DNA of 63,289 nt, counting the filler, from Octopus bimaculoides (taxonomy: Eukaryota), in NCBI RefSeq assembly GCF_001194135.2. It is 4 parts of 4 records of this genome, joined end to end, with 100 filler letters (N's around TTAATTAATTAA, not from the genome) between each part and the next. Parts side by side here need not be neighbours in the genome. Positions count along the whole stretch, not along the records: positions 8,973 to 31,515 come from NC_068990.1; 3 more parts are not named here. The stretch is one strand, 5' to 3'. Both the position numbers and the translations under genes were made by a program. Each line of letters starts with the position of its first letter. Within the stretch, counting starts at the first letter, position 1. Below the pieces are notes generated by a model, which made no database searches, was not told the DNA's origin, and saw only the letters and a program-made list of their open reading frames with translations. This document shows, piece by piece, positions 10,613 through 31,103 of the stretch.

Positions 10613-10852
10613 TTACTAAGATCAATTTTGTGAAAGTAAAAGGTGCAATTCTGAATGTACCTGGGAAAATTTTGTGGAATAAGAAAAATGTAACAGCAGA
10701 AGACTGTGCAGAAAAATGTTTGTCTGACAAAACTTGTTTATCATTTGAAATAACGAAGAGAAGTGGAAAATGTTATTTATCAAAGGAGACTGCAGCTTCC
10801 ATCATGAGATTGGAAACAACCAAAGACAGAGATTACTACCAACAAATAAAAC
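10613..10852 (+). CDS. Exon A1 of PAN/Sushi mosaic gene: PAN/Apple type A module
   Basis: ttctag|TT ACT AAG...ATA AAA C|gtaatt; 240 nt, phase 1-1; TKINFVKVKGAILNVPGK...DCAEKCLSDKTCLSFEITKRSGKCYLS...DYYQQIK with PAN pattern CxxxC-x5-C-x11-C. Confidence 0.9.
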
Positions 10853-11004
10853 GTAATTATTTTTTGTGTTTCTCTTTTCTTTTGAAATTTGTGATTCCAT
10901 TTGTACTTCATAGTTTATAGAAAACCATTTTTATTTATGTGCCACTGTCAGGTTTGGTCCCTTCTTCAGAGACTGAATCACTACAATGTACATTGGTATC
11001 TATT

Positions 11005-11229
11005 GAGTAAAAGGCAGACTATATGACGCGTGTGTACAAACAGCCATGCTATATGGCAGTGAAACATGGGCCGTGACTGCTGAGGACATGTATAAGCTCG
11101 CAAGGAATAAAGCCAGTATGCTCCGATGGATGTGTAATGTCAGTGTGCATACTCAACAGAGTGTTGGTACCTTGAGAGAAAAGTTGGACCTAAGAACCAT
11201 CAATTGTGGTGTGTAAGAGAGACAATTAC
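11005..11229 (+). mobile_element. RTE-clade LINE fragment (region C-terminal to RT)
   Basis: Reads VKGRLYDACVQTAMLYGSETWAVTAED...; homologous to 35035-35438. Confidence 0.75.
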
Positions 11230-11551
11230 CATGAGATATCCTTCTCAGAATTAATGTAAATTCTAGTACATCATGAGACACACATGGAACCTTGCCTCAC
11301 TGTTTTAGGTTGTAGATAATACATTTGTACACCCCTCTTCTGATGGTGTGCTTTTGTTTAAAATTAAATTACCAAAAGGATACTTCACATGCTGGTTGAC
11401 CATCTTTTGAACTANNNNNNNNNNNNNNNNNNNNNNNNNNNNNNNNNNNNNNNNNNNNNNNNNNNNNNNNNNNNNNNNNNNNNNNNNNNNNNNNNNNNNN
11501 NNNNNNNNNNNNNNACACACCATTGATGTCAATTTTTGTTTTCAATTCCAG

Positions 11552-11722
11552 CTTACAACAAAATAAACTGTGGACCACCAAGAGACATTGCTGGTGCATC
11601 AAAGTCCTACAATACCACCAAATATAGATCTGAAGTGATTTACACATGTCCACGAGAAGAAAAGCTAGTATCAAAATGTGAAAAAGACAAAAAATGGACT
11701 GTAGTAGATTCTGGTTGTGAAG
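11552..11722 (+). CDS. Exon S1: Sushi/CCP-like module
   Basis: ttccag|CT TAC...TGT GAA G|gtaaag; 171 nt, phase 1-1; YNKINCGPPRDIAGASKSYNTTKYRSEVIYTCPREEKLVSKCEKDKKWTVVDSGCE (C-x-x-P...V-x-Y-x-C...C...W...C). Confidence 0.9.
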
Positions 11723-12619
11723 GTAAAGCAAATAGATTTTCTCTTGTTGATTCTGTCTGTGTAATTTTGATTTATCTTTGTGCTAAATGTCTTTTGTCAG
11801 AATAGGAGTGGCTAAGTCTATGGCAATTTCCACTGTGATTGTGGATGGTGGGAGGGAGAAATGAAGCTATACCTCAGATCAGAGAATATCATTCCTTAAC
11901 CTACAGGTTTATGCAGATTTATCCCATTATGTCTTCCAAATTTTGCCATGATGATACAATTTTGCTGATACAGGAATACTTCTATTTTACCTATCAAAAA
12001 AACCTATGACCTGAAATCACTGTTTACACTACTGATTGGATGTCCTCAATAAATGTCATTCTTTAACCAACAGGTTTACACAGATTTATCCCATTTTAAG
12101 TCCTGCAAATTTTGCTGCTTTCACCCCATTTCAATGAATTCACACAAGGACAATATATTTCTCGACACCCTCACTTTCATTTACAAGTGGATAAGACCTG
12201 TCAGCCTTATCCACCTTGAACTTATTTTCCTTTGGCTTCACGGATGTAATATCATCAGGGCTAGTTCTATGATATAATGCGCATATTATACTCTTTAAAG
12301 TGGTTGGTAAATGAATAGTGAGATTATAATATTCAGAAAACCATTTATTTTTGTCTTATCAACAATATGATGACCTGTGTAGTGCTGGTACTATGATGAA
12401 TTACTCATTATACAAACTGGCAGTGGATGGTGTTGGCAATGGCATTCAACCAAGAAACCATGGCAAATAAAACATACGAGTGAGAAGTGAACCTGAAATC
12501 TAATAATAATTTAAAGGACAGTACCTCCAAATACAAACTGAGTCACTTACTAGAAAGTGTCCAGTCCAAGCCAACAGCTTGAAAATTAGACATGATATAA
12601 TAATAATGAAGATATATAT

Positions 12620-12669
<50 letters not shown>

Positions 12670-13365
12670 GTATTATATCATCTCATCATGGTAACACTTC
12701 ATTGCATTTTATTACAGAGAACAAATGTCTGAAGCCAGACACAAGGCAAGGTCACTTATAAGTATTTAACCCTTTTATGTTTAAACCAGCCATATCTGAC
12801 CAAAATAACTTGTTTGAAGTTAAAACTGGTCAGAATGGTCTTTCACAGCTACCTTACAGTGTCATTTCAAAAATAAACATTTGCATCATGGAAATCTGAA
12901 ATCCATGAAATAATGCATGATTAATTTAAAATGGTGTAAATTACATGAGTTTCACGTTTGACAGAATAATCTGAATGCTAAATGGTTAATGAAGCGAATA
13001 GAAAGAAAGCAAACATGTTGTGAAGAGGAAATGTACAAAGGAAGAGGTACAAAGTGGTGGAGAGGAAGAAAAAGAAACAAAAGGGAAAAGACTGAACAAG
13101 GTAGTAATAAAGAAGATAGAAAGTAAAGGTATACTAGTAAATAAATAAACACATAAATCTTTATCTTTTACTTGTTTCAGTCATGAGACAACAGCCATGC
13201 TGGGGCACCTCCTTGAAGAATTTTAGTTGATGGAATAGACCCCAGTAATTGTGTTTTTTTAAACCCTGTTACTCATTCTATTGGTCACTAAAATGTACCC
13301 TATTTTATATTGAGAATATGTTGTCAATTGACTTTTTATACATGCTAGGCCACTTCGCTACCTAT

Positions 13366-13396
<31 letters not shown>

Positions 13397-13914
13397 GTAT
13401 GTATGTATGTACATATTTAGAAAGGTAAGAAGGCAGGTGTGTGAGTAGGTGAGTAAAAAAGAAAGAAGATAGGTAGGTTGTTTGGCAAACTGCTTGGCTT
13501 TTGTTTGGTTGTGATTTGTAGGTGGGGAGCACCACACATAAAGCAGCTCCAGAACTCAGTGAGGTGGACAGGTTGTCTCAAGAACTTCATATACTCAGAC
13601 ACACCCATTCTTTGTCACTCCTTTGTGCGGTTCAACGTCTAGAGATCAACTCTGACATCTTTCTAATTCTTCTTCTTTCATAAGTTCCCTCCACTTTAAG
13701 TGATTGGTACTTCTTTATATAGCTATCTTCATCCAGACATATCACATGACCAAACCATCAGTATTCCTTTTATGCCTAATTTTTCTGTCAACACAATTAC
13801 ACATTCTAGTGCATGCACACTGATATTGCACATTCTTTGGCACACGCATTCATCTCTAGTCCCTGCAGATCCTCTCCATTCCCCGTCTACATCTCACTGC
13901 CTTATATTATAGCT

Positions 13915-14240
13915 TTTCATACACAAGCACATACAATCTGCCTTTCACTCAAAGCGAGAGATCTTTTATTGCTAACAAGGGTAAAGGCTCTCTGGACTTT
14001 CTCCATCTCATTTTTAATCAAGCAATTATACATTCAAAATATCTTCCTCCACTGCTAATTCGGTCATCCATGTAACAGACGCTGCCTACAACTTCATGGG
14101 GGCTTCCTGGAAAATCCAATTCCCATGTGTCCTTAACGTTTATTATTCTTGTACATTTGCTACATACAAAGACTACTTTCTCTGTTAACCTTACAGTAAT
14201 TCCATTGCACCTCTCATATGTCCTTATGTTACACTGAGTA
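13915..14240 (-). mobile_element. Degenerate RTE LINE fragment
   Basis: Reverse-complement similarity to 35035-35438 and direct similarity to 19185-19610. Confidence 0.55.
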
Positions 14241-14340
14241 CATCATATGGAATTCCTACCAACACTTTTCCTACTTATTTAGTAAGGCACACACATAATA
14301 TACATTCACCATTGATATCAGTTTCTGTTTTCAATTTCAG

Positions 14341-14511
14341 TTTATGCAAACATTGACTGTGGAAATCCAAAAGACATTGCTGGTGCAGCAATGTCCTATG
14401 ACACCACTACCTATAAATCTGAAGTGACCTATACTTGCCCAGAGGGAGAAAAACTAAAGTCAACATGTGAAAAGGACAACAAATGGACTCTAATTGTGGA
14501 AACCTGTAATG
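14341..14511 (+). CDS. Exon S2: Sushi/CCP-like module (absent from the ORF track)
   Basis: tttcag|TT TAT GCA...TGT AAT G|gtaaca; 171 nt, phase 1-1; YANIDCGNPKDIAGAAMSYDTTTYKSEVTYTCPEGEKLKSTCEKDNKWTLIVETCN. Confidence 0.9.
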
Positions 14512-14949
14512 GTAACATAAGCAGCTTCTTTCTTGTTCTCATTGTCTATGCAATTTTGTTTTAGTTTTGTGTTAAATGTGTTTGTCATAGGAAGACTGAC
14601 TGAATACATTGCAAGTTCCTCAGTGGTTGTGGTTGTTGGTGGGGGAGAACTAGTTATCCTCAGACCAGAGATCTCACAAATGCTTACAACAATGTGGACA
14701 TAGTCAATTTCACTCAAGGCCAGGTAATGGTATTAAACTGGATGATGGATTAAGTCCACCAACCAAGAGCTGGAACTATGGATAGTTTTTTCTCTCTTAC
14801 TCTCTTCCACATTGTTCACATCCACCAAATTTCTTCTTCAAGTCTTAGCTGTGAAGTGAATTTTTAACCATGCAGAAATAACTCTACCTTATACCTTATG
14901 TTTGACAAGTAAACTTATTACTTCCATAGCTATACTACAGCACATCTTG

Positions 14950-15839
14950 AATGTCCTGCAAACCCTGATGGAACAAAATCCCATCATAACCATTGAGGAA
15001 CTAGCAAAGAAGCTTGGATTTGGTCATTCAACCATTCATCGACACCTGCGTGCCATCAGAAAAGTCAGCAAATTGGGTCAATGGGTTCCTCACAAACTTT
15101 GCGAGTCTAATCGCAAACAGAGAGTGAATGTGTGCTCTTCTTTGCTGTCACATCTCATGAAAGAACGTCTTTTGGGCTGAATAGTGTCTGTTGACAAGAA
15201 ATGTGTTCTCTATAAAAATGTCAGGGGCTGAAGACAGTGGGTAAGGAAAGGAGAAACACCGGCACCCCAAGCTAAAGAAGGTCTTCGCCCACATAAGGTG
15301 TTGTTATCTGTTTGGTGGGATATGAAAGGTATAGTCCACTTTGAGCTTTTAAATCCAAACCAAATGATAACAAAGGACATCTACTACAAGCAGCTTGAGC
15401 AACTTTAATCAGTGCTAGAAGAAAAACAACCCTTTGTTTCAAGATGAAATGCTTTCTTCTATTAGGATAATGCTTGGCCACATACAGGAAAGGTGACATT
15501 CCAAAGGCTGGAGCATTTTGAATGGGAACTGATGCCCCACCCACCCATATTCACCAGACATTGTCCGATTTCATTATCATATATTCCACAGTTTTCAAAA
15601 TGATTTGGATGGAAAAAATATGAATTTTGTAGACAAGGTTAGAGCAGTATTGGAGGAGTATTTTTTGTCAAAGACAAGTGAATTCTGGAAGAGGGGCCTT
15701 GTAAGTCTACCAGATAGATATAAGAGCATTGTAGAAAATGAAGGAGAGTATATTTTAGATTAAAAAAGAACTTTGTTGATCTTAAATTATGAAAATAAAA
15801 GAAGTAACAAAAAACCACATTATTTATGGGATGACCCAA
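14950..15839 (+). mobile_element. 5'-truncated, decayed mariner transposon
   Basis: Transposase motifs GQWVPHKL, KVLLSVWWDMKGIVHFELL, DNAWPH, PPxYSPD with stops and frameshifts; right terminus ...ttatttatgggatgacccaa followed by TA. Confidence 0.9.
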
Positions 15840-16185
15840 TATCTACTGCTCAAGGTGTAGACTTGTGTTTGAGTTGGGAAACATTATCATTAATATTGTT
15901 CCTTATTACTATTCTTGTTGTTAAGAGTGATACATTGATAGAATCATTTGAGCATCAGACAAACTCTGCTGTAGCAATTTTCTGGTTTTTTAGCTTCAGA
16001 ATTCAAATGCTGCTGATGTTAACTTTACTCTTCCAGGGCCAATGAAATATGATACTGATCAAATGTAGAAGGAAATTTCATTCATCAATTCCTACGTCAG
16101 TTTTGTCTTAATTTCTATGATGGAATATCATTTATTTTGTTGTAGGTGTTATTGTTTATTGGTTTCAATTTTGTTTTAATTCTAG

Positions 16186-16425
16186 ATCCTCAGATCCATT
16201 TTGTGAAAGTAAAAGGTGCAGCTCTTGATGTAGCTGGCAAAATATTTTGGAATAAGGAAAATGTAACAGCAAAAGCCTGTGCAGAAAAGTGTTTGTCTGT
16301 CCCAAATTGTTTATCATTTGAATTAAGTAACGAAAATGGGCAATGTTTCTTATTAAGGCAAGCTGCAAGTTCCTCCGAGAAAATAAAAACAGTCTCAAGC
16401 AAAGATTACTACCAACGAGTAAAAC
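16186..16425 (+). CDS. Exon A2: PAN/Apple type A module
   Basis: ttctag|AT CCT CAG...GTA AAA C|gtaatt; 240 nt, phase 1-1; ...ACAEKCLSVPNCLSFELSNENGQCFLL...DYYQRVK. Confidence 0.9.
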
Positions 16426-18687
16426 GTAATTATTCTTAGTATTTTATTATTGAAATTATCCTCTCCTCATCTTCTGAAATTTGTGATTGCATTTGAATTT
16501 CTTGGAATAATTATGGACAACTATTTCTGTAAAGACATTGATAGGTTCATCTACATATAACACTAAACATAGACATGTTCCTGTAAAACAAAAACAATAT
16601 TAAGAACTATGAATACTCCTAAGACATTGTCATACAGCATTTGTTCACCTTGAACATTTTTATGGATGTTTTCAGTTGTATTTTGTGTGTGTGGGTGTCT
16701 GTGTATGTGTAACAAAGGAAATTCTTGTTCTTTTTCTTAAACTCAAATGGTAGTAGAAGTAGTAGTAGTAGCAGCTGCAGATTTTCTTCACCTCTCCATG
16801 TTGACATGGCTTTGACAGTACTATTACAACACAATGTCTCATTTCTACTTGCTGTGCTACTTAATCCAATATACAGAATTACAGAAAAAGTAATACCAAG
16901 CTGTTGTTGTGCATTTCCTATATTTTCATATGGTTAATATAGGAAGATAGCCTTCATGTCACCAACCATTTTACCACTCAAAGAGAGTACATTTTCCCAT
17001 ACATCTAGAATCAGAGTAGTTGTCTGCAGAGACAAATGAATCCTTTCTGCTTAAAGAACAACACAGCAAATAAAATCATTCAGAGCAGCTCAAGAATTTT
17101 GTCCTTTCCTGTTGAAATCCTTCCTTGCTGAAACCCTGGACATCAGAGGAAATTCACAAGCTTTAGTGATCTCCGTATTCAAATATTCATGGATGCCAGG
17201 ATGTCATTGCTTATGGTAAAACTTTCTGGCTCAAAAAGAAAGGGGATCCACTTCTCTAAATATTTATGTGGAACTTTAACTGAGCTGAAGTTGCAGATTT
17301 CATTGCAGTATTTATTCTTGGCACTCTCAAGAAGTTCAAGCACATTCACAGATCAGGTTTATACAGAGACAAAATCCAATCAATTTCAATAATATGAACA
17401 GTTATGACATGAAAAGGTCTAGCATGAAATTGACAGGGATCTTCAAAGAGTTTGATATAACCATAAGAATTACTACCAATCTATGTTCAACAAAGTGGAC
17501 ATTACCTTAGAACTGAAGTCTGGTGTCAGACAAGTAATATTCTTACAAAAAGCCTGACGAGGAGAACAGACATCTTCATAGGAATTTGAGCTCCTTCTTC
17601 CAAGTTATAATAAAACATTACAAAATAGAATCTCCAATTCATCCCCAAATTGAGAGATATCCATGACAGAATCCAATGCTAGCTGTTAGCTTGGATTGGC
17701 TTTTGTGAGAAGTATAAAAAGAGCATCTTCCACCAACACACTCGAAAAATATTTAGAAAGATGATAACTTTATTCAGTTCTTCCTTCAAACTAAATGTCA
17801 CTATGAACATAACAAGAGAATTTTTGTCTTCCATTTGACACAATTTCTCAGGCATGCATAAGCGTCACAAGCTATTTAATGCACATAGTGTTAATGTTTG
17901 TTACTCTTGTCTAGACATTACATCTAGCATTTTATGCTACAACAGGAAAGATACTCTTATACAACCTTTATTGCAGACATCAAATTGTGTCTGTCAAAAT
18001 CACTCCACAGAATTCTGCCTTTTTATGACAGTCATTTGTAGAACAACTTTCATTCCGCCTGATTCAGCACACCATTTTCATGCTAATAGAATATATAATA
18101 TATATTGATATAATACAATGTAATATAATATAAATGTATAAACAAAATCACAAATCAATGACTAGCAAGGCACAAATGAAAATGCTTCCTAACTTTCATC
18201 TATTTCGGCTATACGTACAGATTAATTACTATTTTTATTTTTTTATTTCGGTCGTTTTTCCACAAATATAAATTTTTATTATGTTTGTGGAATTTATTAT
18301 GATTAGGAGTGCTGCAAAACACCAATTACAACTGATAAATTGGTTGATCTACAGAGTAAAGCAGAAATAAACAAAATTGGATCTGTACACAATTAAAGGA
18401 GAGAAATACAAATGTATTATCTGCAGCTTACCTATTGAGACAAGGTTTCAAATAAGTCTGAAGATGTTCTACAAATCATATGCATTTTGATTAGAGTGTC
18501 ATTTTGCAGATCAATTATTTGTTTATAATAAATTGACCATTTACAAAATTATGCACCACATGCTTTACAGTATTTAATATATGCTAGAAATATGTGTGTG
18601 TGTGCATTTGCATGTGTGTCTGTGTGGGTGTGTTTGTATGGGTGGATGTATATAAAATAAAAATTCTTGTTTTCTATTTTCTTTCAG

Positions 18688-18921
18688 ACGATGAAGGGCC
18701 TATTATGCTGCAAAAGGTTGGTATACCAAGCAAGGCTATTTTAGGTCGGCTTAAGGATAAGACCTTAAAGGAGTGTAAAAAGGCTTGTGAACAATATACA
18801 GAATGTAACGCTTATCAGTACAATGATGAATCTAAGTTGTGTGATCTGAGTAATGTGACTCAGTTGAATGATGAACTTAAACCCAACGATGGAAGTTGGG
18901 ATATATTCTTAACTAACCCAG
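18688..18921 (+). CDS. Exon B1: PAN/Apple type B module
   Basis: tttcag|AC GAT GAA...AAC CCA G|gtcagt; 234 nt, phase 1-1; ...LKECKKACEQYTECNAYQYNDESKLCDLSNVTQLNDELKPNDGSWDIFLTNP. Confidence 0.9.
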
Positions 18922-19184
18922 GTCAGTAGAGTGTTTCTATTTCATTTGTGTGCATGCCTGTGTGTATTTATATATATAAGTCTGTATACGTATCTATCAA
19001 TTTATGTGTCTATATTTATACACATATGCATATATATACATATGTATATATATTTATATACACACAAGGTCTTGCGCATAACATCTGATGCCTCTTACAC
19101 CCAGTTTTCCTCTCAAATCATTTACACTGTTGTGCATGCACACTGACATTACCATCCAGCAGAGCATGCAACTTCATTTCTTTC

Positions 19185-19610
19185 AAGCCTTCACAAGTCC
19201 TCTGTAGTCAAAGCCCATGTTTCACTGCTATGTAGCATAGCTGTGCATACAGAGTCATCATACAATCTGCTTTTCACACTGAGGGAAAGCCCCTTAGTTA
19301 CCAACGAAGATAGCTCTCTGAACTTTGCCAGCCAGTTCTTATTCTAGCAACTATATTTTCAGAACTTCCTCCTCCACTGCTAACTTGGTCCCCTGGTTAA
19401 CAAAAGCTACTTACTACTACTAATGATTCTCCCTGAGCATTTGAAGGATTTTATTGTCAGTGCATTTTTAGTGTTTATTGTACTTGCACATTTGCCACTT
19501 ACAAAGCCTATATTTTCTGTTAACCTTCCTGTGAAACTGCTACACCCCTTATGTATCCAAAGCTTGCACTAGGTACTACACATGGAGTTTCTACCAACAA
19601 CCTTCTTACA
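19185..19610 (-). mobile_element. RTE LINE fragment
   Basis: Reverse complement aligns by eye with 35035-35438 (gaagttctgaaaatatagttgctagaataagaactggctggcaaagttcagagagc). Confidence 0.7.
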
Positions 19611-20804
19611 TATCAAGCAGGGGCATCTCCCTGAAGCGACTCGTGATTTGTCTGTTTTCCTGCGTATCACGACTTTGGTGTTTTTGCTAAATTAACTTTA
19701 AGGGCCTTAGATTCCAGGTCCTGAAATTTCTGCTCCTTTATTAATCAATCCATAATCAAACAATTGAAGAGAGTAGAGAACAGACTTAGCTCATTCGTAT
19801 TCTTCAGAGCTAAACTATACTGATTGCAAGGGAGGAAATTTTATGAAAGTAGTAGTGGTAGGTACTAGGTTATTTGTCTTAAGTATGTATTTAGCTGGCT
19901 AGAAAGAACTAGGGTGGGGAAGGGGCTTACACTGAGAACAACGCTAATGCTCTTCATATCTGACAAAGAAAGAATTGAAATACGAATTACTTTTAAATGC
20001 TTAATGATTAGAATACGTTGATATTGTAACTTCCAACTGCACTTTCTTGTTCCTATGCTTTAGTGTATCTTATTGGTAAGTTAGTAATATCAAGCAGCTA
20101 TTTTAATATGTATTTTATTTAATATATTAAAAACCAGAAATTCCTTCTGACTTACCCTTAACTTTCTTTTAAAATTTTTCTATAAACTTAATTTTTCTAC
20201 TCATTATTGTAAAAGCTATAATGTGATTACCCATCTGTTACATTATTATATATTTTCTGCAATCATTCTAATATTAACCTTATCCTGAAGTGGAATAATC
20301 TGACTTACAGGAGAACAGTAGGTTGTTCTCTTTGTTATAAATAGTTCACTCTGTCTTCAGTTTGAGAATATATTCACATCATGACCTAATAACAACTTTT
20401 CCTTTAATAATACTTCAGCATTTAGGAGGAATTTGAATTTGCTCTGTCCTGTGTTTTGCCACAACCCTGAATTAAATAGAAAGAGATAATGAATTTCAAT
20501 GGTCTTTTAGTCAGATGCAAAGAACTTTTATGTTTATTTCAGTATAAGCTACCTACTTCTCTCTAGTTGATCAAGTATTAACCAAAACTGTCTTGTAATA
20601 AGTGTCATAGTTCCTATAACCATTGCTTTGGTCATTACTGGAAGATAGTATGGTTTAGCTCTGAAGAAGATTAACAGAGTCTGTTCTCTACTGTCTTCAA
20701 TTGTTTGATTATGACATTTATTAATAAATGTGATTATTGTATTTGGGAACTATGATACTCCAAACTTATCAGGTAAGCTAACTGGAATAAAATATGTAAA
20801 TATC

Positions 20805-21221
20805 TGTAGTGGTGCATGTGGCCGCCATCTTGGGAAGTGCCATTGCGTATGTGCAAGGGACTAGCCGTCAGCGGAAGTACCCGAGCACGCATGCGCAATG
20901 CAACAGGTGGAGAGAAAGCAATAGCATTCTCTCTCTTTTCTCTCTAGCAGCGGTGGCGACAACACGTATCTCTTTTCTCTCTAGCAGCGGTGGTGACAAC
21001 ACGTATTGTCCCAACTCGACCCCGGCATGTGGTCGAAGCTTCTTTGGTATTCTAGCTGCATGCCTATTCACCCAGGAACGAAACGGCTCTACACCAACCT
21101 AGAATAAACTATTGATCTGTTGTTACCGTTATCCCTCGTGTTGTTGTATTTCTGGATTTAATGATTAATATAAGAACTGGGGAGAGATGGCCGAGCCATC
21201 ATATCTCATCCAGTTCTTATA
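20805..21221 (+). mobile_element. Probable solo LTR (417 bp), GC/CpG-rich
   Basis: Starts TGTAG, ends CTTATA (possibly decayed ...ACA), TATC directly on both sides (20801-04 and 21222-25), AATAAA at 21103-21108, internal tandem repeat of about 39 bp, terminal hairpin arms 21168-21180 and 21210-21222. Confidence 0.55.
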
Positions 21222-21600
21222 TATCCATCATTTTTGTACCTTTCCTATAATATTCTGTAATTACATACCAGCTTTACTTGGTGACTAAACTTTAGGATTT
21301 ACAAATTGGAATGGTGACGTTCTGTTAAAGCATAGATTATCTGGTTTTCTAAATCTATCACAGCCCAATTTTGTTTGTCTGGTTTCCTTTTCTTCACAGA
21401 GAGCTTACAAGATATTTCACCAGGCTCCTTAACCATTTCCTTTCATGTGATATACGTATGTCTGTATGTGTGTGCAGATGTCTTCAGTTTGTTATATAGT
21501 CAATATCTTTTATTCTAGATTTGTCCTTATCTCCTCATTCTCCCCCTCCTCCTCCTGCCATAGATTCACCGTTGATATCAGTTTCTCTTATCACTTCCAG

Positions 21601-21771
21601 TTGTTACAAAAGTTAACTGTGGACCTCCAAAGGATGTTGGTGGTGCAAAGAAGTCCTACACTGACACCACCTATAAATCTGAAGTGACCTACACATGTCC
21701 AGGAGGACAACAGTTGAAGTCAAAGTGTAAAGATGACAATAAATGGACTCCAGTTGCATCCAATTGTAAAG
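21601..21771 (+). CDS. Exon S3: Sushi/CCP-like module (correct frame absent from the ORF track)
   Basis: ttccag|TT GTT ACA...TGT AAA G|gtaatg; 171 nt, phase 1-1; VTKVNCGPPKDVGGAKKSYTDTTYKSEVTYTCPGGQQLKSKCKDDNKWTPVASNCK. Confidence 0.9.
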
Positions 21772-22107
21772 GTAATGTAAATAGGTTCTCTTTTGTTGTC
21801 TCTTTCTAGGTTTTTTTATTAAATATCTTTGTCAGAGAATGAATGACTGTATCCACGACAATTTCCGTGGTATTTGTGGCTGGTTGGAGGGAGAGAGAGT
21901 ATTTTTGTTCTGGATGTATAATATAACTTTTCAGTTCAAATCCTGCTAATGTAAACTCTGCCTTTCCATGCCCATTAAAATTTAAAAACCAGTCAGGTGT
22001 AGGAGTTAATTTTATTAACTTCTGCCTCAAGGTTTTGTCTTTTTACTACATTAAAAATCATTGATGTTTTGGTGTTTACATTTGTCTCAATCTTCCTTAA
22101 ATTCCAG

Positions 22108-22347
22108 TTTCTAAAATCTATTTTGTGAAAGTAAAAGGTGCAATTCTGGATGTACCTGGAAAAACTTTGGAGAGTACTGAAAGTGTAACAGCAGATGTTT
22201 GTGCAGAAAGATGTTTGTCTGACAAAAATTGTTTATCATTTGAAATAAAGGGAGAAAGTGGAAAATGCTATTTATCACAGGAAACTGCAGCTTCCTCCAA
22301 GAAAATAAAAGCAGCCAAAACTAAAGATTACTACCAACGAGTAAATG
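22108..22347 (+). CDS. Exon A3: PAN/Apple type A module
   Basis: ttccag|TT TCT AAA...GTA AAT G|gtaatt; 240 nt, phase 1-1; ...VCAERCLSDKNCLSFEIKGESGKCYLS...DYYQRVN. Confidence 0.9.
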
Positions 22348-22842
22348 GTAATTATTCTTTCTGTTTCTATTTTCTAGTTTTGCTGAAATTTGTGATTCCA
22401 TTTCTATGTCATAATACAGTCTGTTCCAATAGAACACCCACTTTTAAGTGGGGATAGATATTATTTCTTAATATATATATATTTATAGAACTGTTTCGGT
22501 AAAGACATTGACAAGTTTATCTATAACTACAGATATAAAGACATTCCTGAAATAAGCAATTTTAGGAATTGTAAATACTATTAGGGCATTCTCATACAAC
22601 ATTTGTTCATAAGTAACACTTTTCTGTATGTTTTCAGTTGCTTCTTTTTTGTGTGCTTGTGTAAGAAAAGAAATTCTTATCTTCTTTTAATCCTGAACGC
22701 TAGTAGTAGTAGTAGTAGCATTAGCAGCAGTAGCAGTTTCAGAGTTTGTGATGACAGTATTACTTCATACCACAGACCTCATTTTTTTTACTGGTATTAT
22801 ATTGTAACTACACCAGAAGGATGAAAAGCAGTATTTCCCAAC

Positions 22843-22900
22843 AGAGTTTGAACTTGGATTGTAAAGAGTTTGAACTTGGAATGTAAAGAGTTTGAACATG
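22843..22900. repeat. Short 22-bp tandem repeat, about 2.7 copies
   Basis: agagtttgaacttggattgtaa / agagtttgaacttggaatgtaa / agagtttgaacatgg. Confidence 0.8.
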
Positions 22901-23499
22901 GAAAATAAATGGCTTTTGCACAGTATTTCATTATTTGTTGCTCCCCTCTAATATGCAAAATATCAGAATCAATCTATTTACTAATCTGTTTAGTTGTGTA
23001 TCTCCTATATTTTGGCATAGTTATTATGCCTGGATGTGTTTCCTGTAAGCAACTTGTTGTGTACCACTTGTGTGCTGGGATCAATGCAATGAACTTTGCC
23101 TCTCCCCAAAATTTCAGGTCTTGTGTTTGTATTGGAAAGGATTATTATTTCAATACTACTACTATTATGTTCTGTGTTAAAACAGTATATAATTATATAG
23201 AAATAACATGAAATCAGAATTTTTAAGACAATATTAGAAAGCCATCTCATTCATTATTTTTCAGATAGATAATTTTTTATCAAAGGCACACTCAGTCCAC
23301 AAGAATATCTTTTTGCATAGTCACGCTTCTAAGAATTCATGTGCATTCTATTTTATCATAAGATGATTTTGGAAGCTCACCTCATAAGTTACATGTACAT
23401 TCCTCTTCTGCTGGTGTGCTTTCTTCAAGATTAAATGGTTTTAACAACACTTGACACATTGGCTAAACATTTGTTGATCAGCACTTAGACAATACTAAA

Positions 23500-23915
23500 T
23501 TAATCCATGGCACCACCCTTCGAGCGTGATTGTTACCAGCGTCGCCTTCCTGGCACTTGTGCTGCAGCTTCACGTTCTTGGCACTTGTGCTGATGACACG
23601 TGAAAAAACATTCAAGTGAGATCGTTGCCAGTGCAACTGGACTGGCTCCTGTGCAGGTGGCACGTAAAATACACCATTTTGAGCATGGCCGTTGCCAGTA
23701 CCGCCTGACTGGCCTTCGTGCCGGTGGCATGTAAAAGCACCCACTACACTCTCGGAGTGGTTGGCGTTAGGAAGGGCATCCAGCTGTAGAAACTCTGCCA
23801 AATCAGATTGGAGCCTGGTGTAGCCATCTGGTTCACCAGTCCTCAGTCAAATCGTCCAACCCATGCTAGCATGGAAAGCGGACGTTAAACGATGATAATG
23901 ATGATGATGATGATA
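23500..23915 (+). mobile_element. Interspersed repeat with internal ~60-bp tandem units and a (GAT)n tail (RTE 3' end or RTE-mobilised SINE)
   Basis: Ends ggcgttaggaagggcatccagctgtagaaac...gcatggaaagcggacgttaaacgatgat; other copies at about 28620-28900 (-), 35700-36140 (+) and 47770-47960 (-). Confidence 0.7.
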
Positions 23916-24121
23916 CACAACTTAAATTTTGAAGGAAGATTTCAAATGAGTCTGAAGATGTGCTAAAACTCACATGAATTCCAAGTTGTCATTTTGCAGA
24001 TCAATTATTTGTTTATAATAAATTGTCCATTTAAAACAAATTATGCACCAAATGCTGAATAATATTTAATGTGTTTGGGAGTATAAAATGTTTTTCTTGT
24101 TTTCTTTCCTTTCTTTTCAAG

Positions 24122-24355
24122 TTGATGACGATATTTTAAAATTTAAAAGCACTTCCATACCTGGGCAGGATACTTTTGGACAGCTGAAAAACGTGACTTT
24201 AAAGGAATGTGACCATGCTTGTCATCAAACTCCAGGATGTAACTCTTATGAATATAAAGAAAAAGCTAAGTTCTGTGATCGAAGTAATGCAACTCACTTG
24301 ACTCATGATCTTGAACCCAACAAAAAGGGTTGGGATACTTATGTCATTAATCCAG
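24122..24355 (+). CDS. Exon B2: PAN/Apple type B module
   Basis: ttcaag|TT GAT GAC...AAT CCA G|gttagt; 234 nt, phase 1-1; ...LKECDHACHQTPGCNSYEYKEKAKFCDRSNATHLTHDLEPNKKGWDTYVINP. Confidence 0.9.
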
Positions 24356-25029
24356 GTTAGTAGAATGTTTCCATTTTATTTGATTTTATTATGCACATGC
24401 TTGCATATATGTATGTGTTTGTGCAATATATATTGCTACATATATATATATATATACATATGTATGCATGGTTATAAGTATATATATATATATATATACA
24501 TACTACTCAAACAGGAGTACAAAGGAAATCGCATGGATTACACAGTTCACTCTAATTATCTCTTGATTACCAGTCATCAATCTAGTGAGCCAAGTTGTGT
24601 TATCACAGAATGATCAAAAGAGAATTTACCTGCATTTCACTGTCACTATGCCTTTGAGTTGTGTGTGTGTTAGGTATGTATGCATACACACATTGAATAG
24701 GTATGTATGTCCATGCACATATACTTATTTGAAGGTAGATGTACATATACAGGTATATGTACATATCATATACAAGTGTAAATTTCTTCAATTTCTTTCA
24801 CTGAATGCCTCAATGTCTGAAATTCAAAATATTTCAAGTGTGTGTGTATGTGCATGCACACATGTGTATGCATATGTGTATCTTTGTATTTATATCTATG
24901 TGCAAATTACTGCAATTTCATTCCCTAAAACCTTTCATTCTCCTCATTCTCACGCTCTTTGTATCCTCATTTTCACACACTTCATAACATATACTCACAA
25001 CTGATGTCAATTACTCTCTTCAATTTCAG

Positions 25030-25200
25030 CTTTCGCAAATATTAACTGTGGGCCTCCCAAAGATATTGTTGGTACATCAAAGTCCTACAAAACCACAGCC
25101 TATAAATCTGAAGTACTCTATACTTGCTCAAATGGAATACAACTAAAGTCAATATGTCAAAAGCACAACAAATGGACTCCAGTAACATCTTCTTGTAAAG
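25030..25200 (+). CDS. Exon S4: Sushi/CCP-like module (absent from the ORF track)
   Basis: tttcag|CT TTC GCA...TGT AAA G|gtaaca; 171 nt, phase 1-1; FANINCGPPKDIVGTSKSYKTTAYKSEVLYTCSNGIQLKSICQKHNKWTPVTSSCK. Confidence 0.9.
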
Positions 25201-28045
25201 GTAACATAAATAGCTTCCCTTCTGTTGTCTCCGTTTAAGTAATTTTGTTAAATTTTTCTATTAAATACCTCTGTCTATTACTATTTCCACAGCATTTGCA
25301 GCTGGTGGGAGGGAGAGAGGAAGTTATCCTCTGACCAGAGATTTCTTCAGAGGCTTGCAATGTAGTGGATTCCATTAATATTATTCAAGTGCCAGATAAT
25401 GCTATTAAATATGGTGATAGATTAAGTTTCCTGACAAAGAAATTGAAGGCTAGAAACTTGTCACCAGTTAGCTTCCAAGCTAGGATTTGTTGTGAAGCAG
25501 ATTTTTAACCACACACACAAAACTCTACCCAATACTTCACTGTTGTTAAGTAAACTTATTAGCTCATTAGCTATACTTCACCTCATCTTGATACATTTTG
25601 CTCTTAATTTCTAACGTGATCTTTCTCACCCATATTTTATATCATCATCCAAAACTCAGTACAATTTAATGCCTTGAGTCATTCTTCACTAATACTCTGA
25701 AATTCTCTGAAACAAACTTGTACTCCTTTTGCTCGTTTCAATGCTCCACTCTTGATTATAACAATACTTCTAATAATGATAATAATAAAGATTCTTGGTT
25801 TGCACACAAAGCCAACAATTTTTAATGGACAACCTTACAATTTAACTGGTCCTTTATGACATTGACACCCACAAGGATGAGAAACAAAGTTAACTTTGGT
25901 TTCATTTGAAGTGATGTCCAAAAAGAACCATACTGTAAAGCATGTCTTTCAATTCTCTAATTAGTACCCATGTACTAATATCCATGTGCTTGAAAATAAA
26001 GATGAGAATGGTGATACAAGCCCCTTAAATCTAGCAGGATTTCTATTGGGGACCAGTTGAAGAAGCCTGCCTTTGAAGATCATCCTGAACACCAAGGATA
26101 AGTGTTCTCTCCAATTATTGTACTCTGGCCAAATTTTATGCACTCTGGTCCCCATCGCCTCTTGCCATAGCTACTAGACAGAGGAAAACTACCTTCTCTG
26201 ATGGTTAAAGGAGGTCATGGGGATATCTCCATGCTGGACTTAACTAACAGCCACATCCATCCCCATACAACAACAATGGATTTATATTACTCCATAAATC
26301 AGCAATACCTGGACATTGAATGAGTGCATGCAAAATGGTTTTGTTTTACAACATGAATTTCGAAGAGGCCTATCTTATGGTACTTATACGACTGTAGATT
26401 TTGTCATGGACTAATTGATCCCTTTCGTAGCTCTACCAAGCCAAGAACTTCAGAAAGTTGTTCATAGTATTCCCTGACAAAATGCCCTCCGAAACACAAC
26501 TTATCAATTTGTTGTTCATTGATACTCAGAACAGCCCTAAGAATGTCAGCACTCTATCTCTCCACTAAATCTCATTGGATTGTAAGAGTGGAACATCCAC
26601 CAATCCCATTGCCCAGATCAGATTTGATCCTGCATTCTATATCTTCTGAAATCCTGAGAATTGTGTTAGGTAATATAAAATACACTTTTTAAAGATGGTT
26701 GAGAATGACTTAGGGAGATATTGTTTATAGTTCTATCATGTTACATGTCCACATAAGGCCTTCCATAATGACTAGTAAATTTTGGATTCATTATTGTAAG
26801 CTAACAGATTTGACAAAGCTTATCTTCTGGTGTAATTTGTTGCATTATTCAACACCACCACCTGGCCATCTTGGTGATGGTGATGGAGACTATTTGATCC
26901 AATGTTAATATGCTGAGCATGAACCACTTTAATCTCACATGTGTAGAAGGGAAGGTGACCTGAGAATTTCATGGCTAAGTAGTTTCTTCCATGGATAGCA
27001 CATTAAAAAGTATAAATACCATCTCGTTGTAGTCAATTATGTATTCTTTTGTTTAGGTACATAGCTAAAAATAATTAGAGAAAGCATTGAGACTGTGTGA
27101 TATTCATCTTCTTCTCAAAGGCACTAGCTGTCTACGTAACGTGAACTGATTTAGACTGAGAATCAAACACTGATCATTGACTCATACCACTGAATCCAAA
27201 TTCATACTAAATGAACAACTATAGAAAAATACTGAGAGTCATTTCCTGCATGAAGAACAAACAGGAAAATGGCTACTTTTTGAATGAAGATATTATAATC
27301 AACTATAAATTTACTCTAATTCATCATTAAAATAGCCTGATAAAAAATTTGGAAGAGACTGTCTTATAAACATAATTGCTTTTCTCTTCCTGTCACTAAA
27401 AATTGAAGTTTGGTGAATTCAAATTTCTTTGCTTACTATATTAAGTTGTGAGCATCCATCATTTACTACCTATTCATATTTATTTACTAGATGAAGATGA
27501 AAGTCAAATCATTTTAGTTCTTCAAGGCAAAATATTACAAAACCAGTGGAGTGATACCTTGAGTAGCCATATTTAGTTACATCCTTTTACATTCTGGGCT
27601 CAAATCCCACTGGAATGTACTTCACTTCTCATTCTTCTGAGGTTGATTAAATAAGAAATGTTCAAGAACAGGGGTTGATTAATTTTTGTATATCCTCCCT
27701 GCAGGAAGTGTGGCCTTGTGTTTAAGTTAGGAACCATTATCATTAATATTCGTAACTTCAACAATGATTATAATTATTCTTGATAATAAGGGTGTTGGAT
27801 TGACAGAATCATTCAACCGACAGACAAAATATGTTGTGGCATTTGTTCTAGCAATTTTATTTTTGAGTCCAAATCTTGTTGATTCTAACTTTGCCCTTCC
27901 TATGGCAATAAAATAAGCTATCGGTCAAGCATAGAGGCTAATTTAATTGGCCAGTTCTTACCTAAAAATTTGGCTTATTTTTTATGTTAGGAATTGCTGC
28001 TGTTGCTGTTGTATTTCATTGACCTAAATGTTACTTTACCTTTAG

Positions 28046-28285
28046 ATCCTCTGGTCCAGTTTGTGAAAATAAAAGATTCAGCTCTGGATGTACCTGGGAA
28101 AACCTTGTTGGATAAGAAAGATGTAACAGCAGATGAATGTGCAGAAAAATGTTTGTCTGGCAAAAGTTGTTTATCATTTGAAATAAATAAAGAAAATGGA
28201 AAATGTTACTTATCAAAGAAATCTGCAGCTACCGCCAAGAAATTAAAGGCAGACAAAGACAAAGATTACTACCAACGATTAAAGT
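28046..28285 (+). CDS. Exon A4: PAN/Apple type A module
   Basis: ctttag|AT CCT CTG...TTA AAG T|gtaatt; 240 nt, phase 1-1; ...ECAEKCLSGKSCLSFEINKENGKCYLS...DYYQRLK. Confidence 0.9.
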
Positions 28286-29438
28286 GTAATTATTCTTTGT
28301 ATTTTATTATTGGAATTCTCTTTTCCATTATTTCTGAAATTTGTGATTCCATTTGTACTTTCAAACCATATAGACCCCAATTTCTGTAAAGACATTGACA
28401 GGTTTACCTATAAGGCCAGATATACACACATTCTAGAAATAAGCAATATTAGAAAATATAAATACTGTTAAGACATTCTCACACAACTTTTATTTACCTT
28501 GAACAATTTGATGCATATTTTTAATTGTTTTTATATGTAAGAAAGGAAATTCTTGTTTTTCTTCAACCTGAGTAGTAGTAGTGGTGGTGGCATTAGCATT
28601 AACAGTAGCTTTTTCTTCATTTGACCAGGGCTGGCAAGCAAGAAGGCTGTACCAGACTCCAGTCTGTTTTGGCATGGTTTTTACAACTGGTTGTTTGTCC
28701 TTCCTAACGCCAACCACTCTGAGAGTGTAATAGATGCTTTCACATGCCACTGGCATGGGTGCCAATTTCGTGACACCAGTGTCTTCCACAACTACAGTTT
28801 TACTTGGCTTGAGGGTCTTCTTCTCAAGCACTGCATAATGCTAAATGGAGTTGGTTATTGCCTCTATGAGGCCCCATGCTTGAAGCCCACCATAATGCCA
28901 AATGGTCTCAGTCCTTGCCTCCAAGATATTTATGCACATATACACATGCAGACTCCCAGGCACAAATCTAGTCATACATATTGGTACTGATATAGAGATA
29001 TACAGATATGCACATAGAACTATATATACATACATACTGTTACTTATTCTATCAGACTCTTCAGCTGAACCGCTAAGTTACAGGGACATAAATACACCAA
29101 CATCAGTGGTGGGGGACAAACACAGACACCAAGACACACACATAAACATATACATATATATACAAAAGGCTCCTTTCAGTTTCTGTCTACCAAATCCACT
29201 CACAAGGCTTTGGTCAGCCTGAGGCTAAAGTAGATGACATTTGCCCAAGGTGCCATGCAGAGGGACTGAACCCGGAATCATGTGGTTGGAAAGTAAGCTT
29301 CTTACCACACAGCCTATACAATCATGCATCACATGCTTTTCAATATTTAATACATGTGTGTGATGCATGTGATGTGTGTTTGTGATTGGTTGATAAATGA
29401 CTAGGAAATATATCTCTTGTGTTTTTCTTCCTTTCCAG

Positions 29439-29672
29439 TTGATGACAAGCCTCTTGTGATGAAAAAAGTTAGCGTACCAAGAAATGCTACTGTAGAAGAG
29501 CTTGAGGATGTGAACTTAAAGGAGTGTAGTGAAGCTTGCAATCAATATCTAAGATGTAACTCTTATCAGTACAATGAGCATGATAAGATATGTGATCTGA
29601 GTAATGTGACTCAGTTGAGTGATGAACTTAAACCCAACAATGGAAGCTGGGACATATACATAGTTAACCCAG
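29439..29672 (+). CDS. Exon B3: PAN/Apple type B module
   Basis: ttccag|TT GAT GAC...AAC CCA G|gttagt; 234 nt, phase 1-1; ...LKECSEACNQYLRCNSYQYNEHDKICDLSNVTQLSDELKPNNGSWDIYIVNP. Confidence 0.9.
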
Positions 29673-29949
29673 GTTAGTAGAATGTTTCCACCTCATTTAT
29701 TGTGTGCATGTCTGTGTATTCATAAATAAATACATGTGTATATTCAGAAAACAGATGTTTAAAGGAGGAGGAGGAGGATGATGATATATGATAATCATCA
29801 TTATCATCATCATTAATCCAGGTCAGTAGAATTTTCCATATTATTTATTGTGTGCATATCTGTGTGTATTTATATATACATATATGTGTGTGTATACGGA
29901 AAACAGACATTAAAGGATGATGATGATGATGGATTATATGTATACACAC

Positions 29950-30290
29950 ACACATACACAAAGTGCTATAAAAAGATTCCTGGACTGGTTATGATTAATA
30001 ATAAATAACTTATTTTCCTAAAGTTTATCATCTTTGAAATAGTCACCTTGCACAGCAATACACCGGCCACTTTTTGAATCTGACCTGGAAGTTATTTTCT
30101 GTAAGTGAGTCAAGGACCTCCTGTGATTCACTTTGGATCTTGACAATGGTATTAAAACAGCAACCTTTGAGCTACATTTTAATCTTTGGGAAGAGATAAA
30201 AGTCTGCAGGTACTAAATCCGGTGAATAGGATGGAAGTGGAAATGATACCATTTTGTTTTTATTTTGGTGAGAAACTCATGCCTGACGAG
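29950..30290 (-). mobile_element. Mariner transposase 3' fragment
   Basis: Minus strand reads PSYSPDLVPADFYLFPKIKM*LKGCCFNTIVKIQSESQEVLDSLTENNFQ; same family as 46866-47640. Confidence 0.8.
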
Positions 30291-30935
30291 AACTCAGTGA
30301 AGAATCCAAGAAGTCACAGGCATAATATAGGAGTTTGAACTAAATCAAGCTCTGGCCAAAGTAACAAAATTATGTCTCTTTCTGATCATACCTGTCACAT
30401 CTGCCTCCTCTGAGAAACCACTTTCTTCATTAAAGCAAGAAGATAATTATATGATATGTTCTCAAAGTGAAGAGAGATTCAGTAAATTGGTCTTCATTTC
30501 CATGGTTAAAGGAACTTCTGAAGATGAAAGTAGAGTGTGGTGCTGATTTTATACCAAAGTGACCAATAAATTTGCTAATAAGAAATAAAGATCTGAACTG
30601 ATTTACGAATAAATTTTAAATAGCTCGTTATTTTTAGGTTCTCTTATTTTCTCAGATTTCTCTTATAACTAGTAACAGTCATCATGGCAATCCTTTCACC
30701 AAGGTATCGTTAATGGGGGAACATCAAATCTAGTGGAGAGGATATCAAGCTTGAAGTGTAACCTGTTAGTAGGAGAGCATTTTCACACATTAAATTAGTG
30801 TGTGCATGTGCATGCAAATGATTCAGTTTTCTTTAGTCAATAACTTTTACTCCAAATTTGTTACTATCTCCTCATTCTCCTTTTTCCTCCTGTCATAAAC
30901 TCAAAATTGATATGAATTTCTCTCATCACTTCCAG

Positions 30936-31103
30936 TTCACACAAAAATTAAGTGTGGAGCACCAAAAGATGTTGTTGGTGCTACTAAATTCTACAGTACT
31001 ACTACCTATAAATCTGAAGTGATCTATACTTGCCAAGATGGAGAAGAATTAAAGGCAACATGTAAAGAGAATAAGAAATGGGCTCCAGAAGTGTCTTGTA
31101 AAG
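30936..31103 (+). CDS. Exon S5: Sushi/CCP-like module (absent from the ORF track)
   Basis: ttccag|TT CAC ACA...TGT AAA G|gtaatg; 168 nt (one codon shorter), phase 1-1; HTKIKCGAPKDVVGATKFYSTTTYKSEVIYTCQDGEELKATCKENKKWAPEVSCK. Confidence 0.9.

Follow-up and report, generated by a model that had tools for sequence, protein, structure and literature searches.

PAN modules bind proteins and glycans on the face formed by their sheet and helix, as is known for factor XI, for the HGF N domain with heparin, for Toxoplasma MIC4 and Sarcocystis SML-2, and for leech antiplatelet protein (LAPP) with collagen. Sushi modules act both as spacers and as binders. MIC4 and SML-2 are secreted tandem-PAN proteins that bind galactose-type glycans, and LAPP, a PAN protein too, is salivary and has collagen as its ligand. 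Here we analysed positions 8973-31515 (the piece, from record NC_068990.1) of a 63,289-nucleotide (nt) window of joined DNA presented as Octopus bimaculoides, assembly GCF_001194135.2. Within this piece, exons spanning 10613-31103 encode PAN modules of two types (A and B) and Sushi modules (S). We consider it likely that the piece comes from the interior of an octopod gene belonging to a coleoid-specific PAN(A)-PAN(B)-Sushi family, the product of which would be a secreted multivalent binder.

The octopus modules have their PAN fold in common with the apple domains of vertebrate factor XI and plasma prekallikrein, the HGF N domain and the plasminogen PAp domain, as judged by Foldseek, and factor XI provides the example of tandem PAN modules used as protein-binding platforms. 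However, the factor XI and prekallikrein apples carry a third disulfide (six cysteines), whereas the octopus modules hold the four-cysteine core only. The octopus protein also lacks protease or kringle partner domains, and its identity to vertebrate PAN proteins is 14-25%. For MIC4, SML-2 and LAPP, which come from unrelated lineages, the likeness is confined to the cysteine core (identity to MIC4 approximately 15-19%), and none of them contains Sushi or GON modules. All three are good functional analogies for a multivalent secreted binder. Proteins of the SVEP1/CSMD type resemble the piece in their Sushi/CCP repeats, but the piece encodes no VWA, EGF, pentraxin, CUB, TSP1 or LDLa domains. SE-cephalotoxin also has Sushi modules, but the domain lists given for this large glycosylated salivary toxin of cephalopods hold no PAN modules.

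Exon anatomy and domain identity

The piece is AT-rich (GC content 0.31-0.40) and abundant in microsatellites and interspersed repeats, as expected for a cephalopod nuclear genome. Its stop-free plus-strand stretches fall into three classes, A, B and S, which recur in a fixed order. Exon ends were set by aligning paralogous copies together with their flanks, where acceptors and donors are conserved, and the coordinates were then fixed by script (Table 1). AG before the exon, GT after it and a polypyrimidine tract were found for all 12 exons. Exon lengths (240, 234 and 171 nt for A, B and S, with S5 at 168 nt) are all multiples of three, and every exon starts at codon position 2, so that each intron is in phase 1. 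Splicing yields 2514 nt, or 838 codons, with no stops, and each of the 12 modules contains exactly four cysteines (48 in total).

These results bear out the original prediction of 12 stop-free exons with GT-AG ends that join in frame, and scripted splicing reproduced its start, end and codon count exactly. One domain per exon and tandem amplification, both also predicted, are seen in the piece and in an O. bimaculoides relative, and the four cysteines said to be kept in every copy are indeed present (48/48). Two details needed correction. A1 and A3 are closely alike as proposed, but share 50 of 78-79 residues rather than 47 of 74. Four of the five Sushi exons had been described as invisible among the open reading frames (ORFs); the ORF list shows S1 and part of S2 but not S3-S5.

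The modules of the piece follow the order A-[gap]-S-S-A-B-S-A-B-S-A-B-S, and the cassettes are spaced at 5922 nt (A2 to A3) and 5938 nt (A3 to A4). The cassette register is PAN(A)-PAN(B)-Sushi, in place of the Sushi-PAN-PAN unit named initially, and the array is shown to be amplified at two levels, that of the cassette and that of the 13-module unit described below. Searches with each module class (tblastn) found no further A, B or S copies on either strand of the piece, and no degenerate modules, signal-peptide exon or GON exon were found in it.

The assignment of the modules draws on both profile and fold comparisons. PAN_1 (PF00024, gathering score 21.4 bits) matched the five of the seven A and B modules that were submitted, with E-values of 3e-11 to 3.5e-6 and scores of 27.2-43.4 bits, all above gathering, and A3 and A4 align to A1 and A2 without gaps. 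Sushi (PF00084, gathering score 20.7 bits) was exceeded by four of the five S modules (S2-S5, 22.4-25.2 bits), with S1 just below at 18.9 bits. Taken with the fold search, the tally is seven PAN and five Sushi modules. A sequence search of the PDB with a 17-cassette profile returned the apple domains of Toxoplasma MIC4 (TgMIC4; E 3e-6) for PAN-B, and the Sushi part matched DAF, CR1 and CR2.

An AlphaFold2 model of A3-B2-S4 reached a mean predicted local distance difference test (pLDDT) score of 72, with domain cores at 80-86, and a predicted template modelling (pTM) score of 0.47, which makes its inter-domain geometry unreliable. At this moderate model confidence the PAN fold, strand-strand-strand-helix-strands, appears twice. 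Foldseek against the PDB matched the factor XI and prekallikrein apple domains, the Sarcocystis SML-2 lectin and MIC4, together with HGF N (root-mean-square deviation approximately 3 A over 80-88 residues), plasminogen PAp (1.7 A over 75) and LAPP (2.5 A over 81), and the probability was 1.00 for HGF N, plasminogen PAp, the factor XI apple and LAPP. The predicted PAN/Apple and Sushi calls are thus confirmed by Pfam, PDB sequence search, the AlphaFold2 model and Foldseek.

PF00024 scores above gathering and a sheet-on-helix fold with two core disulfides place the A and B modules in the PAN superfamily. The third disulfide of an apple domain in the strict sense is absent, since every A and B module has exactly four cysteines; they are PAN modules with a four-cysteine core and not six-cysteine apple domains. 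The S modules combine a match to the Sushi profile with approximately 60 residues, four cysteines, a tryptophan before the last cysteine and a phase 1-1 exon. C165, C191, C201, W207 and C214 of the Sushi part are invariant in 19 cassettes, and across the same 19 cassettes, from five species, all 12 cysteines, the Sushi tryptophan, a YYQ motif and a few hydrophobic residues do not vary. None of the VWA, EGF or pentraxin domains that accompany Sushi in an SVEP1-like protein was found; the exons of the piece give PAN and Sushi only, and no other coding exon was detected.

Table 1. Features of the piece, in window coordinates.
Feature	Position	Strand	Description
Exon A1, PAN type A	10613-10852	+	240 nt, phase 1-1, AG/GT ends, PAN_1 E 3.1e-11, 4 Cys
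Exon S1, Sushi/CCP	11552-11722	+	171 nt, phase 1-1, Sushi 18.9 bits, 4 Cys and Trp kept
Exon S2, Sushi/CCP	14341-14511	+	171 nt; second of the S-S doublet; 84% identity to O. sinensis positional counterpart
Exon A2, PAN type A	16186-16425	+	240 nt; Pfam, AG/GT ends and frame
Exon B1, PAN type B	18688-18921	+	234 nt; Pfam, paralogue alignment, AG/GT ends and frame
Exon S3, Sushi/CCP	21601-21771	+	171 nt; Pfam, paralogue alignment, AG/GT ends and frame
Exon A3, PAN type A	22108-22347	+	240 nt; class inferred from alignment with A1, A2 and A4; in AlphaFold2-modelled unit
Exon B2, PAN type B	24122-24355	+	234 nt; Pfam; 80.5% identity to a module of O. bimaculoides LOC128248837
Exon S4, Sushi/CCP	25030-25200	+	171 nt; Pfam, paralogue alignment, AG/GT ends and frame
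Exon A4, PAN type A	28046-28285	+	240 nt; paralogue alignment, AG/GT ends and frame
Exon B3, PAN type B	29439-29672	+	234 nt; Pfam, paralogue alignment, AG/GT ends and frame
Exon S5, Sushi/CCP	30936-31103	+	168 nt, one codon shorter; one-residue deletion also in O. sinensis S5-like modules
Assembly gap (100 N)	11415-11514		Within the A1-S1 intron; a 234-nt PAN-B exon and over 1 kb of intron are predicted to be missing here
Terminal direct repeat, left copy	8973-9018	+	46 nt, 100% identical to 31470-31515; in S-to-A type intron
Terminal direct repeat, right copy	31470-31515	+	Flanks on both sides colinear with S4-A4 intron
Degraded mariner/Tc1-type transposon	14860-15760	+	S2-A2 intron; Transposase_1 (PF01359) E 2.7e-20 and helix-turn-helix, over three frames; does not contribute to the gene product

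The assembly gap and the higher-order unit

In the first cassette a run of N interrupts the sequence from the A1 donor (10852/10853) to the S1 acceptor (11551/11552). Because this run is intronic no reading frame crosses it, and because both exons are of phase 1-1 the A1-S1 splice stays in frame whatever the gap contains. The distance from A1 to S1 is 699 nt, compared with the at least 2061 nt needed by the other A-B-S intervals, where A-B introns measure 1153-2262 nt, the B exon 234 nt and B-S introns 674-2679 nt. To the left of the gap the sequence starts as a normal A-downstream intron and then carries a copy of an interspersed repeat. Positions 11240-11390 are homologous to A-to-B introns, namely the A2-B1 and A3-B2 introns of the window and 14186-14319 of L001, the O. 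bimaculoides locus of LOC106869402, where this stretch sits approximately 300 nt upstream of a B exon. The 37 nt to the right are the conserved stretch that closes an S-upstream intron.

Where the gap lies, the O. sinensis protein LOC118764742 has a 78-residue PAN-B module, the only large gap in its end-to-end alignment with the spliced protein of the piece. Since the interval is too short, its two flanks are of different intron types and O. sinensis has a PAN-B there, an exon appears to be missing. The gap almost certainly hides a 78-codon (234-nt) PAN-B exon, and its true size is probably more than 1.2 kb. With this exon restored, the unit would comprise 13 exons and approximately 916 codons.

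The 46-nt terminal repeat of the piece is not of low complexity and had no match in viral and metagenome collections, and the terminal sequences run colinear with the S4-A4 intron (25493-25561 with 31443-31511, 26645-27284 with 9357-10021, and 27557 onward with 10187 onward). In the module names used here, the last 13 modules of LOC118764742 read (A3 B2 S4)(A4 B3 S5)(A1 B S1 S2)(A2 B1 S3), such that S5 is followed by A1. O. sinensis repeats this pattern of 13 modules, in which one Sushi is added to four A-B-S cassettes, and it is visible in O. bimaculoides LOC128248837 as well. When rotated accordingly, the spliced protein of the piece aligns end to end with residues 1723-2637 of LOC118764742 at 68.5% identity.

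Because the 46-nt ends are identical and O. sinensis places A1 after S5, the piece can be taken as one period of a higher-order repeat. It is shown to correspond to one 13-module repeat (A-B-S, A-B-S, A-B-S-S, A-B-S) of a longer array rather than a linear 838-codon gene. The higher-order unit predates the species split, because positional counterparts between species (68.5%) exceed paralogues within the piece (42-63%) in identity. The piece breaks off inside S-to-A type introns on either side, leaving the gene incomplete at both ends, and the matching ends indicate that the 22.5-kb unit would be repeated head to tail in the genome. They point either to two or more highly similar tandem copies that the assembler merged into a cycle, or to an artefact of assembly.

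LOC118764742 (XP_036361601.1, 2643 aa, annotated as 'uncharacterized protein') is like the piece in its A-B-S cassettes, its 13-module order, its exon junction residues and its S5-type Sushi with a one-residue deletion. It differs in being of another species or a paralogue (per-module identity 61-84%), in holding the PAN-B missing at the assembly gap and in comprising approximately 2.75 higher-order repeats. Protein order against O. sinensis was used for this comparison because no unique colinear path at the DNA level leads to the LOC106869402 locus: every module of the piece matches many L001 modules at 66-82%.

The linear gene of 12 exons and 838 codons could instead be partly a construct of the assembly, either a cycle of collapsed 22.5-kb copies or a joining of the wrong ends. 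Its exons would still be real, but copy number and order across the piece ends and the gap would not be as written. This is a serious possibility, not far short of an even chance. The identical, non-repetitive 46 nt at both ends, a 100-N scaffolding gap exactly where an exon is missing and the S5-like then A1-like order in O. sinensis all speak for it. On the other hand, each module within the piece stands in the order given by a gene model built independently for another species, and the four cassettes differ from each other by 20-35% in nucleotides and so are not collapsed copies of one another.

The array illustrates how such loci defeat short-read assembly, with an exon lost in a gap and a contig closing on itself. 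To automated classifiers the piece would look 'circular' or as though it bore direct terminal repeats, even though it is a eukaryotic tandem array.

The coleoid family and its proposed product

A word-based protein search found eight relatives, all of them octopod (E = 0 to octopod proteins), from O. vulgaris, O. sinensis, Abdopus aculeatus (GON-Abd-1) and O. bimaculoides, which has four of the genes on a single 94.6-Mb chromosome. In an exhaustive profile search of 1.84 billion representatives, single stretches covering the whole A-B-S profile occurred only in octopod proteins. This search added O. sinensis LOC118764742, O. bimaculoides LOC106869390 (1730 aa) and a 4470-aa O. vulgaris model labelled 'SVEP1-like', together with numerous ORF fragments of one exon each that were of PAN-A, PAN-B or Sushi type. 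Matches from outside the cephalopods were to generic proteins with several Sushi or several PAN modules, such as annelid tandem-PAN proteins. The lineage-specific origin suggested at the outset therefore agrees with both searches, in which every whole-cassette protein is octopod.

The modules of the piece are 60-84% identical to their best counterparts and, because of this, its gene is none of the listed relatives; such values suggest another octopod genus or an unannotated paralogue. Its cassette order with a Sushi doublet after B, and whole-cassette similarity to this family only, place it within the PAN-PAN-Sushi(-GON) family. Several gene models of the family lack GON, so this domain may not be universal. 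No named protein with such a repeat architecture was recognised at first, but relatives that have it are already public as 'uncharacterized protein' or under the mistaken label 'SVEP1-like', which removes most of the hoped-for novelty. Judged by its sequence, the gene of the piece is a further member of an existing, uncharacterised coleoid family; the result is that one member of a known family is correctly annotated, and no new kind of system is described. What we add is the cassette register, the hidden gap exon, the higher-order repeat with its self-closing piece, and the conserved scaffold with fast surfaces.

The minimal form of the family is GON-Abd-1 (UniProt R4G2C1, 465 aa), which has PAN-A, PAN-B and Sushi in the same order as the piece, but in a single cassette with an N-terminal signal peptide (read by eye) and a C-terminal GON domain. 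O. bimaculoides LOC106869402 reads A-B-S-S-A-B-S-A-B-S-A-B-GON, the same module order as the piece, with one module per exon and exons of 240, approximately 231-237 and approximately 171 nt; its GON domain is split over four exons. GON (PF08685) was recognised in GON-Abd-1 and LOC106869402 with E-values of 5e-35 and 6e-33. The piece has neither a signal-peptide nor a GON exon. A cuttlefish (Sepia) protein reads PAN(B)-Sushi-Sushi-GON, and an Argonauta protein has a hydrophobic, signal-peptide-like N-terminus and then four PAN modules (A-B-A-B); the label 'zonadhesin-like' is attached to an Argonauta relative.

The public model of LOC106869402 starts right after a run of N, so that its N-terminus is cut off, and is probably truncated or split from a neighbour by the gap. 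Upstream of its annotated start (L001 1-10000, CM046610.1) there are more B, S and A modules, beyond a 794-N gap at 9189-9982. O. vulgaris CAI9728790.1 and O. sinensis XP_036361599.1 are named SVEP1-like, yet read by eye as PAN and Sushi throughout. We regard the 'SVEP1-like' label as an annotation artefact of Sushi matches. Several models also contain translated intron read-through.

The spliced protein of the piece has nine N-x-S/T sequons, 14.1% lysine and an isoelectric point of 8.66, in keeping with the predicted lysine-rich product with N-x-T/S sequons in several modules; no hydrophobic segment was found in its 837 residues. By analogy with its relatives, the gene would continue on both sides of the piece, starting with a signal peptide and perhaps ending with GON, and its product may be a secreted, N-glycosylated, lysine-rich protein built like beads on a string. 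Many PAN and Sushi modules, each offering a small disulfide-locked binding face, could together provide avidity-based multivalent binding to a protein or glycan. As each module has a phase 1-1 exon to itself, unequal crossing-over can add or remove cassettes while the frame stays intact, and the piece is a clean example of how such exons permit both cassette and higher-order amplification. Fast divergence of the cassettes at non-scaffold positions suggests differing specificities, which would broaden or tune binding.

As a setting, secretion by the salivary (venom) apparatus seems the likeliest, although setting and ligand are the weakest parts of this proposal. UniRef names the Abdopus relative 'GON-Abd-1', and this venom-gland style of name gives a circumstantial hint of tissue. 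The protein is reported to derive from venom-gland (posterior salivary) cDNA, in work by Ruder and colleagues (2013, J Mol Evol). Searches of the full-text literature found no mention of GON-Abd-1, of the LOC identifiers or of PAN domains in octopus saliva, and the supplements of the Octopus vulgaris saliva proteome gave no match to the family. In Whitelaw et al. 2020 (PMC7656900), the key to Fig. 3 has 'PAN/Apple domain' among 14 entries, with panels headed Brain and PSG, and the caption refers to the top 5 Pfams by expression in brain; because the PAN/Apple entry comes after the neural families in the key, we infer that it belongs to the salivary-gland bars.

Several points weigh against an internal segment of a gene for a secreted multivalent binder. 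The piece lacks a signal-peptide, GON or terminal exon, so secretion and the C-terminal domain are borrowed from relatives 46-84% identical to it. The figure key of Whitelaw et al. 2020 (PMC7656900) is not specific to the PAN-PAN-Sushi family. The identical ends could be an artefact of the assembler rather than a real tandem of the 22.5-kb unit. Finally, the high ratios of nonsynonymous to synonymous divergence (dN/dS) given below could reflect relaxed constraint instead of diversification of binding, and their values are uncertain because intron flanks diverge faster than synonymous sites of the A exons.

The same multivalent binding could also serve a role unrelated to venom, in a structural or adhesive matrix (mucus, egg coat or cuticle-like) or in humoral immune pattern recognition. 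PAN and Sushi modules are established in all such roles elsewhere, and complement regulators as well as the galactose-binding apple lectins SML-2 and TgMIC4 are among the closest structures. Giant models of 2643 and 4470 residues look more like matrix proteins or mucins than typical toxins, and the 'zonadhesin-like' label of the Argonauta relative points in the same direction. Against this stands the one member known from cDNA, which bears a venom-gland protein type of name. We regard a non-venom role as a plausible minority view.

If salivary secretion does apply, the variability of the cassettes would be worth study, as it would be for an immune lectin. Cephalopod salivary (venom) proteins and lineage-specific expansions are active topics. 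The family is large, its models reaching 4470 residues and a single O. bimaculoides chromosome holding at least four of its genes, and is restricted to coleoids. A bolder and, in our view, rather unlikely extension is an octopod-specific, rapidly diversifying repertoire of multivalent lectin-like proteins, acting on prey through saliva or venom or on microbes in the haemolymph, with cassette exons generating the variation. If true, the 13-module repeats and phase 1-1 cassettes would act as a built-in generator of copy number and specificity, PAN-A dN/dS at or above 1 would reflect positive selection on ligand-contact surfaces, and the near-identical ends would mark a very recent, possibly polymorphic, amplification of 22.5 kb.

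Divergence of the modules and repeats in the introns

To assess constraint on the exons, a neutral-drift simulation applied the observed number of substitutions to each class consensus. The probability that all 12 exons remain stop-free with 48 cysteines kept was approximately 4e-20, which excludes neutral drift of the exon array. The exons contain no insertions or deletions except for one in-frame codon in S5, compared with 2-122 gap columns per pair in the 150-nt intron flanks (the S1 upstream flank was left out of this comparison, as the gap leaves 37 nt). Divergence (d) is mostly 0.35-1.0 in flanks and 0.21-0.46 in exons, and was higher for flanks in most comparisons.

Values of dN/dS differ among module classes. 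Sushi pairs range from 0.3 to 0.85, B2 against B1 or B3 gives 0.3-0.8 and B1 against B3 1.5-2.4, and PAN-A pairs lie at approximately 1.0-1.9 with four estimators. Medians among O. bimaculoides paralogues are 0.70 (A), 0.62 (B) and 0.52 (S). The purifying selection first proposed is half borne out: the frame, the splice sites and the Cys/Trp/Tyr scaffold are conserved, but constraint at the codon level is weak by the module-by-module dN/dS suggested as a check. We read this sequence pattern as a probable rigid disulfide scaffold with fast-evolving surfaces. Positive selection was rejected as a proven cause of the PAN-A ratios at or above 1, given 79 codons per pair, dS below intron divergence and O. 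bimaculoides medians of 0.5-0.7. Synonymous divergence of the PAN-A exons (dS approximately 0.18) is lower than that of Sushi exons in the same cassettes (0.4-1.1) and than adjacent intron d (0.35-0.6), which hints at gene conversion among A exons or at synonymous constraint, for example from splicing enhancers.

PAN-A ratios near or above 1, a cassette without a B exon in the assembly and transposons invading the introns might also be expected of a dead, decaying array that encodes nothing. However, 12 of 12 exons are stop-free and in phase with AG/GT ends and all cysteines intact, and O. sinensis positional counterparts are closer than paralogues within the piece. With the neutral probability given above, the intact exons effectively refute a pseudogene, which we reject as very improbable. 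An origin in an apicomplexan parasite of the octopus (such as Aggregata) with PAN/apple microneme adhesins is supported by the best PDB sequence matches for PAN-B, which are apicomplexan (TgMIC4 and Sarcocystis microneme antigen L2/SML-2), but has a negligible chance and was rejected, being refuted by close relatives on octopus chromosomes of 95-118 Mb, by intron flanks and interspersed repeats common to the O. bimaculoides locus at 70-92%, and by a likeness to MIC4 that is low and limited to the cysteine core.

The claim that the transposons in the introns are private to each copy stands for the mariner element of the S2-A2 intron, which has no counterpart in the equivalent introns of the other cassettes, but not for an interspersed repeat present in three introns (11003-11218, plus strand; 19277-19070 and 13952-13770, minus strand). 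An ORF in this repeat (11007-11213) reads '...LYGSETWAVTAEDMYKL...RWMC...' and resembles by eye the C-terminal tail of a reverse transcriptase from a retroelement without long terminal repeats (non-LTR), with no match in Pfam. The same repeat is found in the O. bimaculoides locus (L001 25183-25027, 78%). No structured RNAs or tRNA-derived elements were found in the introns of the piece.

A second repeat of approximately 190 nt lies at 23717-23911, with an inverted copy at 28755-28619, and gave no tRNA or Rfam match. Copies at L001 776-583 and 24572-24390 are 91-92% identical to it, compared with approximately 70% for the surrounding introns. This repeat is probably a young or still active short interspersed nuclear element (SINE) or miniature inverted-repeat transposable element (MITE) shared by octopods.

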